This document shows positions 2,291-7,312 of a stretch of 64,000 nt of DNA, in pieces (position 1 is the stretch's first letter; each line of letters starts with the position of its first letter). The notes beneath the pieces were generated by a model. It had not been told where the DNA came from. It made no database searches and was given only the letters and a program-made list of their open reading frames with translations. A program made the position numbers and the translations under genes. This stretch comes from Blastocystis sp. Blastoise (lineage: Eukaryota; Protista; Bigyra: Opalinata): assembly GCA_039096225.1 (NCBI GenBank), contig JBBPEB010000028.1:744001-808000 (forward strand), given 5' to 3'.

Positions 2291-2790
2291 ATGTCAGACA
2301 ACAAATTACCCGTTATTACTATTCAGCATTGTTCTTCCTGAGGTTATGGCAATCAGGCTAGAAGATTAGGATATCGCATTGGCTCTGCGATTCCAGAACT
2401 TGAAGGTCGTATCCAGACAGAAGTCTATAGTGGAAAATCATCTGTATATACTCATGTCGTTCTTCTTTTAGAACGCTTTCTCTACATTTTATCATTCTAT
2501 CTTATAGTATTTCGGTTTTTCTGGTGCCTTCGAAGTCCTCTATGATGGTATGTATTAAGTATCATATTTTTTTGATACATGAAATTATTATATATGTTTA
2601 TATATATATATATTTATCTTATTCATTATTTTAAAATATTTTTAGATGTAGTTATATATTCAAAATTACAAGAAGGAAGAATACCAAATCCAGATGTATA
2701 TTTCTTTTTTTTTATTCATATATATATATATATAACTATTTTATATAGGAGATTATTGCCCTTATCTATAACAGAATACATAAAGAATAA
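2291..2790 (+). CDS. Rdx-family (SelW/SelT/SelH-like) selenoprotein, paralogue 1; in-frame TGA (Sec) at 2339-2341
   Basis: Exons 2291-2443, 2508-2547, 2646-2695, 2749-2790 (all GT-AG) give MSDNKLPVITIQHCSS-U-GYGNQARRLGYRIGSAIPELEGRIQTEVYSGKSSYFGFSGAFEVLYDDVVIYSKLQEGRIPNPDEIIALIYNRIHKE*. It has the CxxU, GAFEV and SKL..GR.P...EI Rdx motifs and a SECIS in the 3'UTR. Confidence 0.93.
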
Positions 2791-2884: not shown

Positions 2885-3030
2885 TTCATGTATATACTTA
2901 ATCTATAAAATTTTTGATACAATTCTTGTATTTTGATGATTATCTATTGAGAAAGCTTTACTGAGCATCAATAGTATATGAATAAATTCTTATAGACATA
3001 TATTTGCCTATATATGTGAATATATATGAA
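2885..3030 (+). ncRNA. SECIS element (form 2 core 2936-2982) inside an extended multi-stem 3'UTR structure
   Basis: ATGAT(2936-40), helix TATCTATTGA/TCAATAG(T)ATA, apical AAA plus ministem GCT/AGC, then TGAA(2979-82). It lies ~145 nt after the stop of a CxxU gene and is near-identical to the core behind paralogue 2. Confidence 0.9.
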
Positions 3031-3457
3031 TTATTTTATATTTATGTATTGTTTATAATGTCTTTTTGCAATCTATTTATGGTTTTGTTCATATGTTTTT
3101 ATTTTCAGATGAAATAAGTCAACTAGATCATGGTTTATTTCATTCGTAGCATTTGTGAGATACTCGTTATATAATATGATAAAGATAAATTGCTTTTATT
3201 GCAGATATCCATAGAATTAAAAGAATATTCGTTTTTTTATGAAATAATATAGCCTAAATTGCATTCCTTGAGTTTCGTTCAAAGCTATAAATCACTTTAT
3301 GAAGACAAATAAATTAATGAGCACACATGACAACTCTTTAAAGGTTAAAAGATTATAATCACGAAAAATAAACTTTTTGCAACCAAATGAATTCTCTTTT
3401 CCACAAAAAATTAATTTGTTTTTAAATATATTTTATTTTAGCAAAAACAAAAAGAAA

Positions 3458-3920
3458 ATGAATACGTTTTTCATTCGTGCGTTGGCTACCTTAAAGAGCC
3501 CATCTATTAAGATTCTTCATTGTACATCCTGAGGTTACGCTAACATGACTAATCAGATGGTTAGTAGAATAGGCTATGCAATTCCTTCATTAAAAGGAAA
3601 GATAACAGACTCAAAGTATAAGCCTGCATCTGGAATTGTATTTTTGTATAGTATTCTATCATAATAATTTCATTTCTAGTCGTTTGGACCAACAGGAGCT
3701 TTTGAAATCTATTATAATGGTACACAATTTATATATATAAGCTGATTCTATGTATATACAAACTATATTATTATAGATGAACTTATCTTTTCCAAATTAA
3801 AGGAAGGAAGAGTTCCTGATCCTGAAGTATTTCCATATAATATTCATTATTTATTGCTTATTCTATTCTTCTATATAAATATAGGAAATTATAAAGTTAA
3901 TAAAGGAAAAAATGGAGTAA
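3458..3920 (+). CDS. Rdx-family selenoprotein, paralogue 2; in-frame TGA (Sec) at 3530-3532; N-terminal extension resembling a mitochondrial presequence
   Basis: Exons 3458-3637, 3680-3719, 3777-3826, 3885-3920 give MNTFFIRALATLKSPSIKILHCTS-U-GYANMTNQMVSRIGYAIPSLKGKITDSKYKPASGISFGPTGAFEIYYNDELIFSKLKEGRVPDPEEIIKLIKEKME*. The three intron positions and phases match paralogue 1. Confidence 0.93.
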
Positions 3921-3990
3921 TTTCAAAAATCTCCTTATATTTTATATATTTGTTTTTAAAGATGTGTTTAATATATGATATGTTTTCTTT

Positions 3991-4138
3991 AATTTATTAT
4001 TCTTAATCTATATGCTTTATAATACAATTCTATTTGTATTTTGATGATTATCTATTGATAAAACTGGTTTTATAGTCTCAATAGTATATGAATAAATCTA
4101 TATAGAGATACATTAGCCTATGTATTGAATAATAAATT
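3991..4138 (+). ncRNA. SECIS element (form 2 core 4044-4092) inside an extended multi-stem 3'UTR structure
   Basis: ATGAT(4044-48), TATCTATTGA, TAAA, ministem ACT/AGT, TCAATAGTATA, TGAA(4089-92). The ministem shows a compensatory change (G-C to A-U) relative to copy 1. Confidence 0.9.
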
Positions 4139-5115
4139 TCATTGAAATCATATGATATTCATTGTATTCAATTGATATTTTATTTATTTGTTTTCTTTAA
4201 TGTTTGCTTTATTTCTTACATATAAACATCGCTTGATTCAAATAAACAATTGATAATTTCCTTTTTTTCTTTTCTTTTTAAAAGAATAAATAGATTCAAC
4301 ATCTTCTCTCACTTTTGTAACAATTAACATGACAATAATTGATTGCCACTATCGACAAAAACTTAAGTTAACTACATTCAAAAAGAAATTACACTCTCCT
4401 AAATAAATCGTTTATCACAATTTTCAGTGATAATTAATAGATTTAAGAAATAATTCATGGAAAGGCTACTTATTTATTAAAATCAATAAGTACGAGTTAA
4501 AATAAATTCAAAATTGTGTTTCTTATTATATTCATATATATTTTATGTATATAAAATAAGACTCACATTAATTGAAGCACTGTAATAATTCATTTGATGC
4601 AAAATTGTTCTATCTGATAAAAATAACTGACACAATCAACAATATGAATTCAATTAATTATCAAAGTGTAGTATATATACTATGAATATATAAAAATAAC
4701 TTGATTGCAGAAAGTATTGTTGATGATAATCATCATTTGTATGTTATAATAATGTCAAAACTATGTATAACTATGAAATTATTAACTGTTAAACCATTTA
4801 AAGATATTATTACATAACTAATCACAGAGATCAAGAAGATATCAGTAACCATGAATGACAAATTATAGTTTATTTTTCATTTTTGCTCTTCACATAAAGT
4901 CATTCATTCATTATTCGATCATTTATAAGTTTATTACTCACATATCATTGACATCTCAAAAGATATTTAAAAAAAAATAAAACTTGTTAGAATCATTTGT
5001 GTGGTGTTTTTTGTGAATATTTGCTTTAACAAGTTTCAAAAGATTATGGTTGAATATCTTAGTAGATGATGGAAGTCATAATTATTTTTATCTGTTACGT
5101 TTCTCTATTCTCATA

Positions 5116-7312
5116 ATGTCACAAAACACTCGACTTTATGAATTATTTGGTGTAGCTCCTGACTCAACTTTGGAAACAATAACAGTATTTTATGTGTTCA
5201 ACAGTCTTATAGTGATATCTTTTATATATAGAATCAATATAATAATTTGCGTAAATGTTACGATGCTGAGAATAATGCTAATGAAGGTGTGATGAGTTTT
5301 GTATGTGCTGTTCATTATTTTTTTTTATTTCTTGTAGTTACAAGTATATAAAAGAGCATACGAGATTCTTTCTGATCCAATAAAAAGAGTAATGTAATTA
5401 TTTTGATTGTTTTAATATTTTTTTTTAGCAATCTTATGATCAATGTGGAGATGGTACTAGTTATGTATTTGATCCAAATTCTAATACTAATTTAAATGAA
5501 TCAGAAACAGCGAACGTTCCTTCAAATGCTAATAATGTATTAGATTCATCTAATAATACTAATTTAAATGAATCAGAAACAGTGAATCTTCTTTCAAATG
5601 CTAATAGTGTGTTAGATTCATCTAATAATACTAATTTAAATGAATCAGAAGTAACAAATGTTCCTTTGAATGCTAATGATGTATTAGATTCATCTAATAA
5701 TACTAATTTAAATGAATCAGAAACAGTGAATCTTCTTTCAAATGCTAATAATGTATTAGATTCATCTAATAATACTAATTTAAATGAATCTGAAACAGCA
5801 AATGTTCCTTCAAATGCTAATAATGTATTAGATTCATCTAATAGTAATAATTTAAATGAATCAGAAACAGCGAATCTTCTTTTGAATACGAATGATCCTC
5901 ATTGGATAGAAATTAAACAGAGTTCTGAAATTATTGACCAAACTTTAATTGCTATTGATCCTTCGTTACAAACAAATAATCCAGTCACTTCAGAAACCTC
6001 AAATGATGTAGCAAACACAAGTTTGGAACACTTAAATGAATCATCAACTGTTTCTACTAAGGAAGTATCTCTATATGATGAATTTTGGAAGTTTCAAGAT
6101 AAATTTGTTAAAGATAGTTTTTTGGGTGCTATTATGCTACTTATCATTTTTATTGATTTTATTCCAATGATTGTTTTTCCAATTCTATTAGGATTGAGAA
6201 TAGATTCTATTGTTGATTGGAAATTTACCTATATTATGATCCCTATTTTTATATTAGATATTTTTATAATTTTGTGGTGCTTTAGTATTCATACCTGTGA
6301 ATTTTCTGTAGAGGCATTTTTTGCTTTGTATATATATATCTATTATTAAATTATTATAATTTATTAATTTATTTGTTGAATAATTATTTATTTTCTTCTA
6401 TAGCCTAATAAAATTATCTATTTTATGTTTTGTAATATCAACAGTGACTTTCTGTCTTTCCGTCGATTTTCATTATTTCAGTTTAACTATAGGTTTATGT
6501 CCATTATTTTTGGGATATTTATTATGGATAACAGCTATTCTTATAGAGTAAGTATTGAATCTTTTTTTATGGATAATAATTAATATATTATAAATATTTC
6601 TAGTTCTTGCAGATCTGTGGTTCATTTCTTTTATCATCTTCAAAGGTTATTGATTATCCTTCCTGTTATATCTATTCTAATAGCTTCTTTAATCTATGAT
6701 CAAATATTAGAATGGTCATACAATATTATATTTATTCCTCTATGGATTTATTTCATAATTTATAGTTTTTTATTGTATATATATAACTTTAATTTATTAT
6801 GATAATATACATATTATATAGTATTATAACGAGTGACACCCCTTTCGTATTTATATACTATTATTTTTTATTTCTATTATTATATTATAGGGAGAAAATG
6901 ACAACACACACACATCTTTGTGTCGTTATGATGCTTTTTTTTATTCAATTTATCTTTTTGCTTTTACCATTTGTATGTGCATAAAAATGAATGGAAATAA
7001 TATACATTTAATTTATTTTTGCATTCCTTATGTTTTAATTGTATGTATATATTTACATTTATATATTATTATATTTTTTCATTTAAAATATAGATTATTC
7101 TTCTTTGTGATAGTGTCTTTAACTATATGACTGACAACCCAAAATGTGATTCTTCTGTATTTTCCTGTGATGAATGTATAAATACGATGAATGCTAATAG
7201 TTTTTTTACAAATTTATTTGTATATCGTATTATATCAGCATTATTTATGAAGGTTGTTATTGCTTTCATCATATTATCGGTCGTGTTACTCATTATTTAT
7301 ATATTACCTTAG
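5116..7312 (+). CDS. J-like domain + 24-aa repeats + multi-pass TMEM185/FAM11-like membrane region (3' end approximate)
   Basis: MSQNTRLYELFGVAPDSTLETIT|NQYNNLRKCYDAENN..|..RAYEILSDPIKR|QSYDQCG is a J-domain pattern without HPD. The C-terminal hydrophobic hairpins carry W.....IP motifs (RIDSIVDWKFTYIMIPIF, DQILEWSYNIIFIPLW). Confidence 0.7.
5480..5895 (+). repeat. Coding tandem repeat, 72-bp (24-aa) unit, about 6 copies
   Basis: Unit NNTNLNESETxNxxSNANxVLDSS recurs every 72 bp (5551, 5623, 5695, 5767, 5839). Confidence 0.95.

Follow-up and report, generated by a model that had tools for sequence, protein, structure and literature searches.

Two tandem SelenoH-like genes of Blastocystis sp. 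Blastoise carry, in each of their 3′UTRs, a form-2 SECIS core (AUGA, 12 nt, AAA, ministem, UGAA) that is embedded in a common five-helix fold. The helices are P1, which closes the domain, P2, which is SECIS helix I, the hairpin P3, the core of helix II and ministem, and the side hairpin P4. The extra helices P1, P3, and P4 are probably accessory parts of the SECIS domain of this SelenoH pair, most likely with an architectural role. The window, that is, the whole stretch of DNA analysed, comprises 64,000 nt of contig JBBPEB010000028.1 (positions 744,001 to 808,000; assembly GCA_039096225.1). It has a GC content of 22% and comes from a Blastocystis of the tortoise gut. All coordinates below are those of the window, and all features lie on the forward (+) strand.

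The two genes are neighbours and have four exons each. Gene A (2291..2790) has the exons 2291–2443, 2508–2547, 2646–2695, and 2749–2790, with the Sec codon UGA at 2339–2341 in the motif HCSSUGY and the stop codon TAA at 2788–2790. It was delineated from spliced RNA contigs with GT..AG joints, exon translations, and matches to TIGR02174 and PF10262. Gene B (3458..3920) has the exons 3458–3637, 3680–3719, 3777–3826, and 3885–3920, with the Sec codon UGA at 3530–3532 in the motif HCTSUGY; here, the evidence is a spliced RNA contig, the translations, and PF10262. In both genes, the introns and the in-frame UGA are confirmed by spliced contigs from an RNA run and from a poly(A) gut metatranscriptome. 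The contig of gene A reaches position 3073, which is 43 nt past the 3′ strand of P1, and the mRNA of gene A spans the whole domain including this strand. The contig of gene B breaks off at 4067, within the SECIS. The expectation that the transcripts include P1 was thus borne out for gene A, with the coverage of gene B stopping at 4067.

Both products contain the HC[ST]SU motif and, downstream of it, the motifs G-A-F-E and P-x-P-[DE]-E-I-I. When the exons were queried separately, PF10262 matched gene B with 23.2 bits (cut-off 22.6), and TIGR02174 gave 40.9 bits for gene B with neighbouring pieces and 23.7 bits for gene A. Hence, both proteins match the Rdx/CXXU_selWTH models and combine the C-x-x-U redox motif with an Rdx domain. 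Going by the HCTSU ... FPEP motifs and by their likeness to the human protein, we tentatively assign them to SelenoH rather than SelenoW; the original prediction had spoken of selenoprotein genes only.

The RNA domain spans 2885–3030 in the 3′UTR of gene A (copy A) and 3991–4138 in that of gene B (copy B), with its parts in the same order. The original prediction had assigned the same topology to both UTRs, and every helix was found where it had been placed.

The core: In copy A, the SECIS core occupies 2936–2982, with AUGA at 2936–2939 and UGAA at 2979–2982. In copy B, it occupies 4044–4092, with AUGA at 4044–4047 and UGAA at 4089–4092. Both copies thus have the kink-turn quartet. Helix II is formed by 2941–2950 with 2968–2978 (U2975 bulged) and by 4049–4058 with 4078–4088; in each copy, it has 10 bp with a single bulged U. 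The AAA follows at 2952–2954 and 4060–4062. Its spacing of 12 nt agrees with the unpaired AA(A) expected 10–13 nt past the quartet (PMC1802603). The ministem consists of 2955–2957 paired with 2964–2966 in copy A and of 4063–4065 paired with 4074–4076 in copy B. Both copies keep an AAUAAA hexamer just 3′ of the core. In gene A, this hexamer evidently does not serve as a nearby poly(A) signal because the RNA contig continues to at least 3073.

P2: This helix lies below the internal loop and has 11–12 bp, as required of SECIS helix I. In copy A, the 5′ strand 2902–2913 pairs with the 3′ strand 2984–2996, with C2989 bulged. In copy B, the strands are 4007–4019 and 4093–4106, in which an outer part (4007–4013 with 4100–4106) is followed by an inner part (4016–4019 with 4093–4096).

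P3: The hairpin sits in the 5′ internal loop, whose strand from helix I to AUGA measures 20–24 nt. In copy A, it extends over 2916–2932 with the arms 2916–2922 and 2926–2932 and the loop UUC, giving a stem of 6 bp, or of 7 bp when G2916–U2932 is counted. In copy B, it extends over 4021–4040 and has 7 bp and the loop UUCUAU.

P4: In copy A, the hairpin lies at 2997–3016 with 7 bp, the arms 2997–3003 and 3010–3016, and the loop UUGCCU. In copy B, it lies at 4107–4126 with 7 bp and the loop UAGCCU. Five of the six loop bases are therefore identical between the copies (UKGCCU).

P1: The 5′ strand of copy A (2886–2897) is paired at 11 of 12 positions with the 3′ strand 3018–3029, which is inside the transcript. 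In copy B, 3991–4002 is paired at all 12 positions with 4127–4138. P1 adjoins P2 and P4 via 0–1 nt on two sides. On the third side, the linker UUAA (TTAA in the DNA) connects P1 to P2 at 2898–2901 and 4003–4006, and it is invariant between the copies.

Compared with the form 2 SECIS (type II; Rfam SECIS_1, RF00031), both copies share the quartet, the AAA spacing, the 10-bp helix II, the ministem, and helix I. They differ in two additions, namely the 6–7-bp hairpin P3 within the loop strand and a helix I that ends in a three-way junction with P4 and the 12-bp P1. By definition and in search models, SECIS elements are unbranched hairpins. The two copies depart from this topology, as P3 branches from the internal loop and P4 from the lower end of helix I, and the Rfam models, run on the window and on five SECIS loci, matched neither of them at E ≤ 10. 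As the in-frame UGA stands at the Sec position of the HC[ST]SU motif (SelenoH/Rdx) and the core lies in the 3′UTR, each 3′UTR carries a working-type form-2 SECIS, which is predicted to direct Sec insertion at the C-x-x-U UGA. A genuine ATGA..AAA..TGA core inside a multi-branch fold, as originally proposed, is therefore present in both copies with respect to motifs and spacing.

Folding calculations agree with this architecture. The minimum-energy fold of each copy recovers P1, P3, helix II, the ministem, and P4. P2 is present in that of copy B and displaced by alternative pairs in that of copy A. Against dinucleotide shuffles, the z-scores are −2.8 (A) and −2.5 (B), and equally good folding was seen in 1 of 200 and 2 of 200 shuffles, respectively. 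The RNAalifold consensus contains P2, P3, helix II, the ministem, and P4, and the comparison with shuffled controls that had been proposed came out in favour of the fold. In the whole 3′UTR, the pair probabilities (copies A and B) are 0.92 and 0.99 for P1, 0.92 and 0.94 for P4, and 0.57 and 0.95 for P3. P2 and helix II score lower in the thermodynamic model (P2 of copy A only 0.15–0.32), and the nearest-neighbour energies behind these values cannot represent the kink-turn with its G-A quartet. Folding of the full UTR left the interior pair probabilities unchanged by the context; since P1 is strongly paired, the interior fold is independent of the flanking UTR. The RNA is thus predicted to be an autonomously folding domain of ~145 nt with the SECIS at its centre.

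Each part of the domain can be given a putative role. By analogy with other eukaryotes, the core would recruit SBP2 and the Sec elongation factor. Helix I is prolonged by P1, with P4 at their junction and P3 filling the 5′ loop strand before AUGA. The three-way junction of P1, P4, and helix I may seal the SECIS from the AU-rich and repeat-rich UTR, and this sealing would allow the kink-turn core and helix I to form reliably and without mis-pairing with the UTR. P3 would compact the long 5′ loop strand and leave UUG-A before the G-A pairs. As a second option, the P4 loop and the UUAA linker could tune Sec insertion in a gene-specific manner. Given how strictly the sequences of P3, the linkers, and the P4 loop are conserved, a gene-specific binding partner is conceivable, which we offer as a conjecture.

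A stronger reading takes the whole branched structure as an “extended SECIS,” in which P1, P3, and P4 with their loops are needed for Sec insertion or tune it. The accessory helices might do so, for example, by recruiting an extra factor or through a contact just after the UGA. We regard this reading as less likely than not. An extra binding factor for the branched domain, which the original prediction had suggested, is pure conjecture. As to a direct contact, the P4 loop and the region at UGA+7 show a complementarity of 4–5 nt in both genes, with many competitors in gene B; we rejected this kissing contact as probably due to chance.

The comparison of the two copies carries most of the argument. 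Proteins A and B have 49% amino-acid identity, and the same codon is used at 17 of 43 conserved degenerate residues. At the nucleotide level, identity is 55–72% in exons, 47–57% in introns, and 57–58% in the flanking UTR, with a shuffled baseline of 57%. The RNA domain reaches 77% with the aligner used for exons and introns and 84–90% with MAFFT. Judged by these values, A and B are old tandem duplicates whose synonymous sites and introns look randomised, and the RNA domain is the best-conserved portion of either gene. Conservation is concentrated in two invariant blocks of 25 and 20 nt. The first comprises the P3 3′ strand, the junction, AUGA, and the helix II 5′ strand, and the second comprises the helix II 3′ strand, UGAA, and UAAAU. 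They flank an apical loop that is nearly unalignable. We also considered a recent gene-conversion tract, which is disfavoured by this mosaic of a diverged apical loop flanked by invariant blocks.

The substitutions respect the helices. Among 119 ungapped columns, 21 are substituted, and 12 of these substitutions fall in stems; nevertheless, 38 of 39 pairs are kept. When the same substitutions were placed at random, equal retention occurred in ~1 of 100,000 trials (p ~1e-5). Paired cells amount to 98.7% versus 26–54% in slid controls. In five pairs, both partners differ between the copies; two of these pairs belong to P2, one to the ministem, and two to P4, and the slid controls have none. In P4, all four substitutions are compensated (two pairs, p ~0.009). 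In P1, there are 13 differences in 24 positions, and 11–12 of 12 pairs are kept (p ~3e-5). The claim that pairing persists despite sequence turnover in P1, P2, P4, and the ministem is thus upheld. P3 and helix II show no covariation, being invariant between the two copies. The only support for the pairing of P3 comes from conservation, from energy, and from a 3-nt indel that is confined to its loop. These patterns show purifying selection at work since the old duplication, acting on pairing in P1, P2, P4, and the ministem and on sequence in P3, helix II, and the linkers.

Could only the canonical core of helix I, kink-turn, and helix II be functional, with P1, P3, and P4 as passengers from the ancestral UTR? 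Such passengers would be helped by the propensity of AT-rich, (TA)n-like sequence to form hairpins, and the tandem copies might have exchanged sequence now and then by gene conversion. Closing helices of 10–12 bp do arise by chance in 10–18% of the loci in the window under free placement, and helices of ≥12 bp in ~10%. P1 in one copy alone is weak evidence because the (TA)n-rich genome makes long closing helices common; hence, the weight of the case lies on the same register in both copies and on the compensated changes, not on the existence of P1. The comparison rests on two copies, which are paralogous and from one genome, and this favours the passenger explanation, as do a P3 without covariation and the canonical unbranched SECIS elements that serve three other selenoprotein genes of the organism (see below). 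It is opposed by the 84–90% identity of the domain next to randomised synonymous sites, introns, and flanking UTR, and by the compensation of all four P4 substitutions and of most substitutions in P1. In addition, the diverged apical loop between invariant blocks fits poorly with the recent conversion tract. On balance, we consider it improbable that the extra helices are mere passengers.

Somewhat less probable still is a reading in which P4, P1, UUAA, and UKGCCU belong to a cis-element of their own that happens to adjoin the SECIS. Such an element could act in mRNA stability, localisation, or 3′-end formation, or it could be the site for a protein unrelated to recoding. P1 and P4 do fall outside the SBP2 contact region established for other eukaryotes, and the P4 loop is conserved at five of six bases. 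The structure may also mask a processing signal, given the AAUAAA 3′ of the core and a transcript A that continues past it. However, P1 encloses the SECIS as well, and linkers of 0–1 nt to P2 and P4 make one junction rather than two modules. Moreover, the domain model found no other P4-like copy in the genome.

The other SECIS elements of the same genome bear on this accessory role of P1, P3, and P4. Its Sec machinery includes two identical tRNA-Sec genes (72 bits; ARAGORN anticodon TCA). Selenophosphate synthetase (SPS) encodes Sec in G-U-G-C-K, thioredoxin reductase 1 (TR1; C3) ends in G-S-C-U-G-stop, and thioredoxin reductase 2 (TR2; C8) ends in C-U-G-stop. The TR1 SECIS is unbranched, with a 5′ internal loop of 7 nt and a basal stem of 6 + 10 bp. 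That of TR2 has a loop of 7 nt and a helix I of 7 + 5 bp, and that of SPS has a loop of 4 nt and a helix I of 9 bp, followed by an outer helix. Equivalents of P3 or P4 are absent from all three.

Like the SelenoH copies, these elements have the consensus GAUGA ... AAA ... UGAAUAA (AGAACAA in SPS). The spacing to AAA is 12 nt in A, B, TR1, and TR2 and 11 nt in SPS. Long composite basal stems of 12–18 bp occur in TR1, TR2, and SPS as they do in A and B. The GCU/AGC ministem of TR1 equals that of copy A, and SPS may form a 2-bp GC/GC. TR1, TR2, and SPS differ in their 5′ loops of 4–7 nt and in having bulges or loops of 2–13 nt in the basal stem instead of P4, and they share no sequence similarity with A and B beyond the consensus. 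In the light of all five elements, P1 would prolong helix I once more, and P4 would occupy a break in it.

Because TR1, TR2, and SPS have unbranched elements, the machinery of the organism works with ordinary SECIS elements and may not need the extra stems. We infer that the Sec machinery does not require them and that the extension is specific to the SelenoH pair and not lineage-wide. The element had been predicted to be both selected and lineage-specific: the compensated changes favour selection, and the unbranched elements contradict the second attribute. They likewise leave a divergent SBP2, which had been put forward, unsupported, as these are standard elements in the same genome. The Rfam models also miss the unbranched elements (TR1 reaches 18.3 bits, below the gathering score of 35; TR2 and SPS are not found). 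Hence, the failure of Rfam says nothing about branches. We consider it very improbable that the whole lineage has a divergent SECIS architecture, evolved together with a divergent SBP2: the Rfam failure on A and B and the dropping of Y-shaped candidates by an early SECISearch-type procedure (PMC1802603) would fit it, but the TR1, TR2, and SPS elements are unbranched with 5′ internal loops of 4–7 nt, and Rfam fails on them as well.

Next to these elements, further copies of the domain were sought. In the assembly (33.3 Mb, 34 contigs), a covariance model of the domain found only the two SelenoH copies, with 127 and 133 bits. The next match, on C2, had 26 bits and is a TA repeat. The suggested scan thus revealed no further branched domain of this kind in the 33-Mb genome, and the model detected no further copy of the P4-like motif there. 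An origin of the P1 arms from a mobile element was rejected because target-site duplications and further copies are absent. With the profiles PF10961, PF08806, PF10262, and TIGR02174, nothing beyond A and B was found in the genome, and the codon pattern C-x-x-U-G-Y occurs there in A and B only. Among the first 100 of 131 matches to a SECIS consensus pattern, which were inspected by eye, helix II complementarity was seen only in A, B, TR1, and TR2. The five known SECIS elements of the genome align poorly, and a pooled model would fall below the genome noise.

Searches for orthologues yielded none. An exact 25-mer had no match in metagenome contigs, and the protein search with exon-1 pieces gave no matches either. 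Scanning of metagenomes with a protein pattern yielded 224 pattern matches, none of which was confirmed. By way of synteny with a CCT-gamma exon, we found an 87%-identical relative in ENA, on a contig of 783 nt that is too short to be of use.

In a limited search of the literature, we came across no SECIS whose internal loop carries a hairpin or whose helix I contains a junction. A related case is the k-junction, a kink-turn elaborated into a three-way junction, which demonstrates that kink-turns tolerate a third helix (PMC4005666, PMC10573300). Copies A and B resemble it in that an extra helix is predicted to emerge from a kink-turn-type motif. They are not k-junctions, as the extra helix of the k-junction is on the non-bulged strand, whereas P3 is on the bulged (AUGA) strand. 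The Y-shaped candidates that the SECISearch-type procedure filtered out as false positives (PMC1802603) share with A and B a branched topology around a SECIS-like core. Unlike those candidates, A and B belong to expressed genes with Sec at a conserved position and have compensated pairs. Selenoprotein genes with no detectable SECIS are numerous in some lineages; in early-branching fungi, a SECIS was found in only 5 of 16 selenoprotein genes, and undetected variants were suspected (bioRxiv 10.1101/314781). For Blastocystis, Sec-type thioredoxin reductases were predicted in ST7 (2011), and the paper on the tortoise isolate, in which amino-acid identity within the clade falls as low as 56%, does not mention selenoproteins (PMC10690189).

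The impact of the finding is limited to one gene pair in one protist genome. If the “extended SECIS” reading were true, multi-way junctions backed by covariation would be seen in a SECIS for the first time. The element would also belong to a class that a Y-shape filter in the style of PMC1802603 would discard, since branched SECIS elements would tend to be lost in such filtering. Being clearly maintained by selection, the branched element shows that a kink-turn core is compatible with a hairpin in the loop strand and with a junction within helix I. Models for SECIS searches may need to permit such insertions. The SelenoH pair is also a tractable case in which to ask whether SECIS-flanking sequences set the gene-specific efficiency of Sec insertion.

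The hexamer AAUAAA lies immediately 3' of the SECIS-core 3' GA, on the 3' strand of helix I, and is kept in both copies (2981-2986 in copy A, 4091-4096 in copy B). The transcript of gene A extends to at least 3073 despite its hexamer.

The P4 loop is complementary to codons beginning 7 nt 3' of the Sec UGA in both SelenoH-like genes. Five base pairs can form in gene A (2348-2352 with loop 3004-3009) and four in gene B (3539-3542 with loop 4114-4119). This complementarity is probably due to chance because several further sites in gene B match the loop equally well.

Elsewhere in the genome assembly (G000), two thioredoxin reductase genes are of the Sec type and end in C-U-G-stop: TR1 (C3:617030-619700; loci L022, L025) and TR2 (C8:2091102-2094200; loci L023, L026). 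Their first exons are 56% identical, each gene has one unbranched SECIS, and the two elements have only the consensus in common. The selenophosphate synthetase gene (C34:268847-270470; loci L018, L019, L034) carries Sec within G-U-G-C-K. On the 3' side, its SECIS has AGAA in place of UGAA, and the 13-nt 3' loop of the basal stem includes UUGCUU, which is similar to the P4 loop UUGCCU of the SelenoH pair. The sole glutathione peroxidase found (C33:907640-907963; locus L020) has Cys rather than Sec at the active site, and its nearest relatives in a protein search are mainly bacterial.

The SECIS pattern search of the genome also returned near-identical strings of 53-54 nt in two families, which may be part of subtelomeric or dispersed repeats. 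The first family is found at C4:8441, C14:34043, C16:2155166, C17:24851, and C17:896468, and many of its members sit in roughly the first 35 kb of their contig. Further strings are at C8:28376, C13:1289905, C14:1320737, C19:203191, C20:59884, and C23:130663.

Immediately upstream of the SelenoH pair, a CCT-gamma (TCP-1) chaperonin gene is represented by its 3' part (1-1593), with short, (TA)n-packed introns. One of its exons is 87% identical to an ENA metagenome protein (P0121; source contig of 783 nt), and this match indicates that public assemblies include a close relative of this Blastocystis. A gene with a DnaJ-like N-terminus starts at about 5123 and encodes tandem Asn/Ser-rich repeats of ~26 residues each (N-A-N-x-V-L-D-S-S-N-N-T-N-L-N-E-S-E-T...; 5460-5900).

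In the minimum-energy folds of the whole UTRs, short helices are stacked beyond P1, approximately between 2871-2885 and 3031-3046 in copy A and between 3975-3987 and 4139-4155 in copy B. Their sequences differ between the copies. These helices may be AT-rich noise; alternatively, the SECIS domain may be longer than 147 nt.
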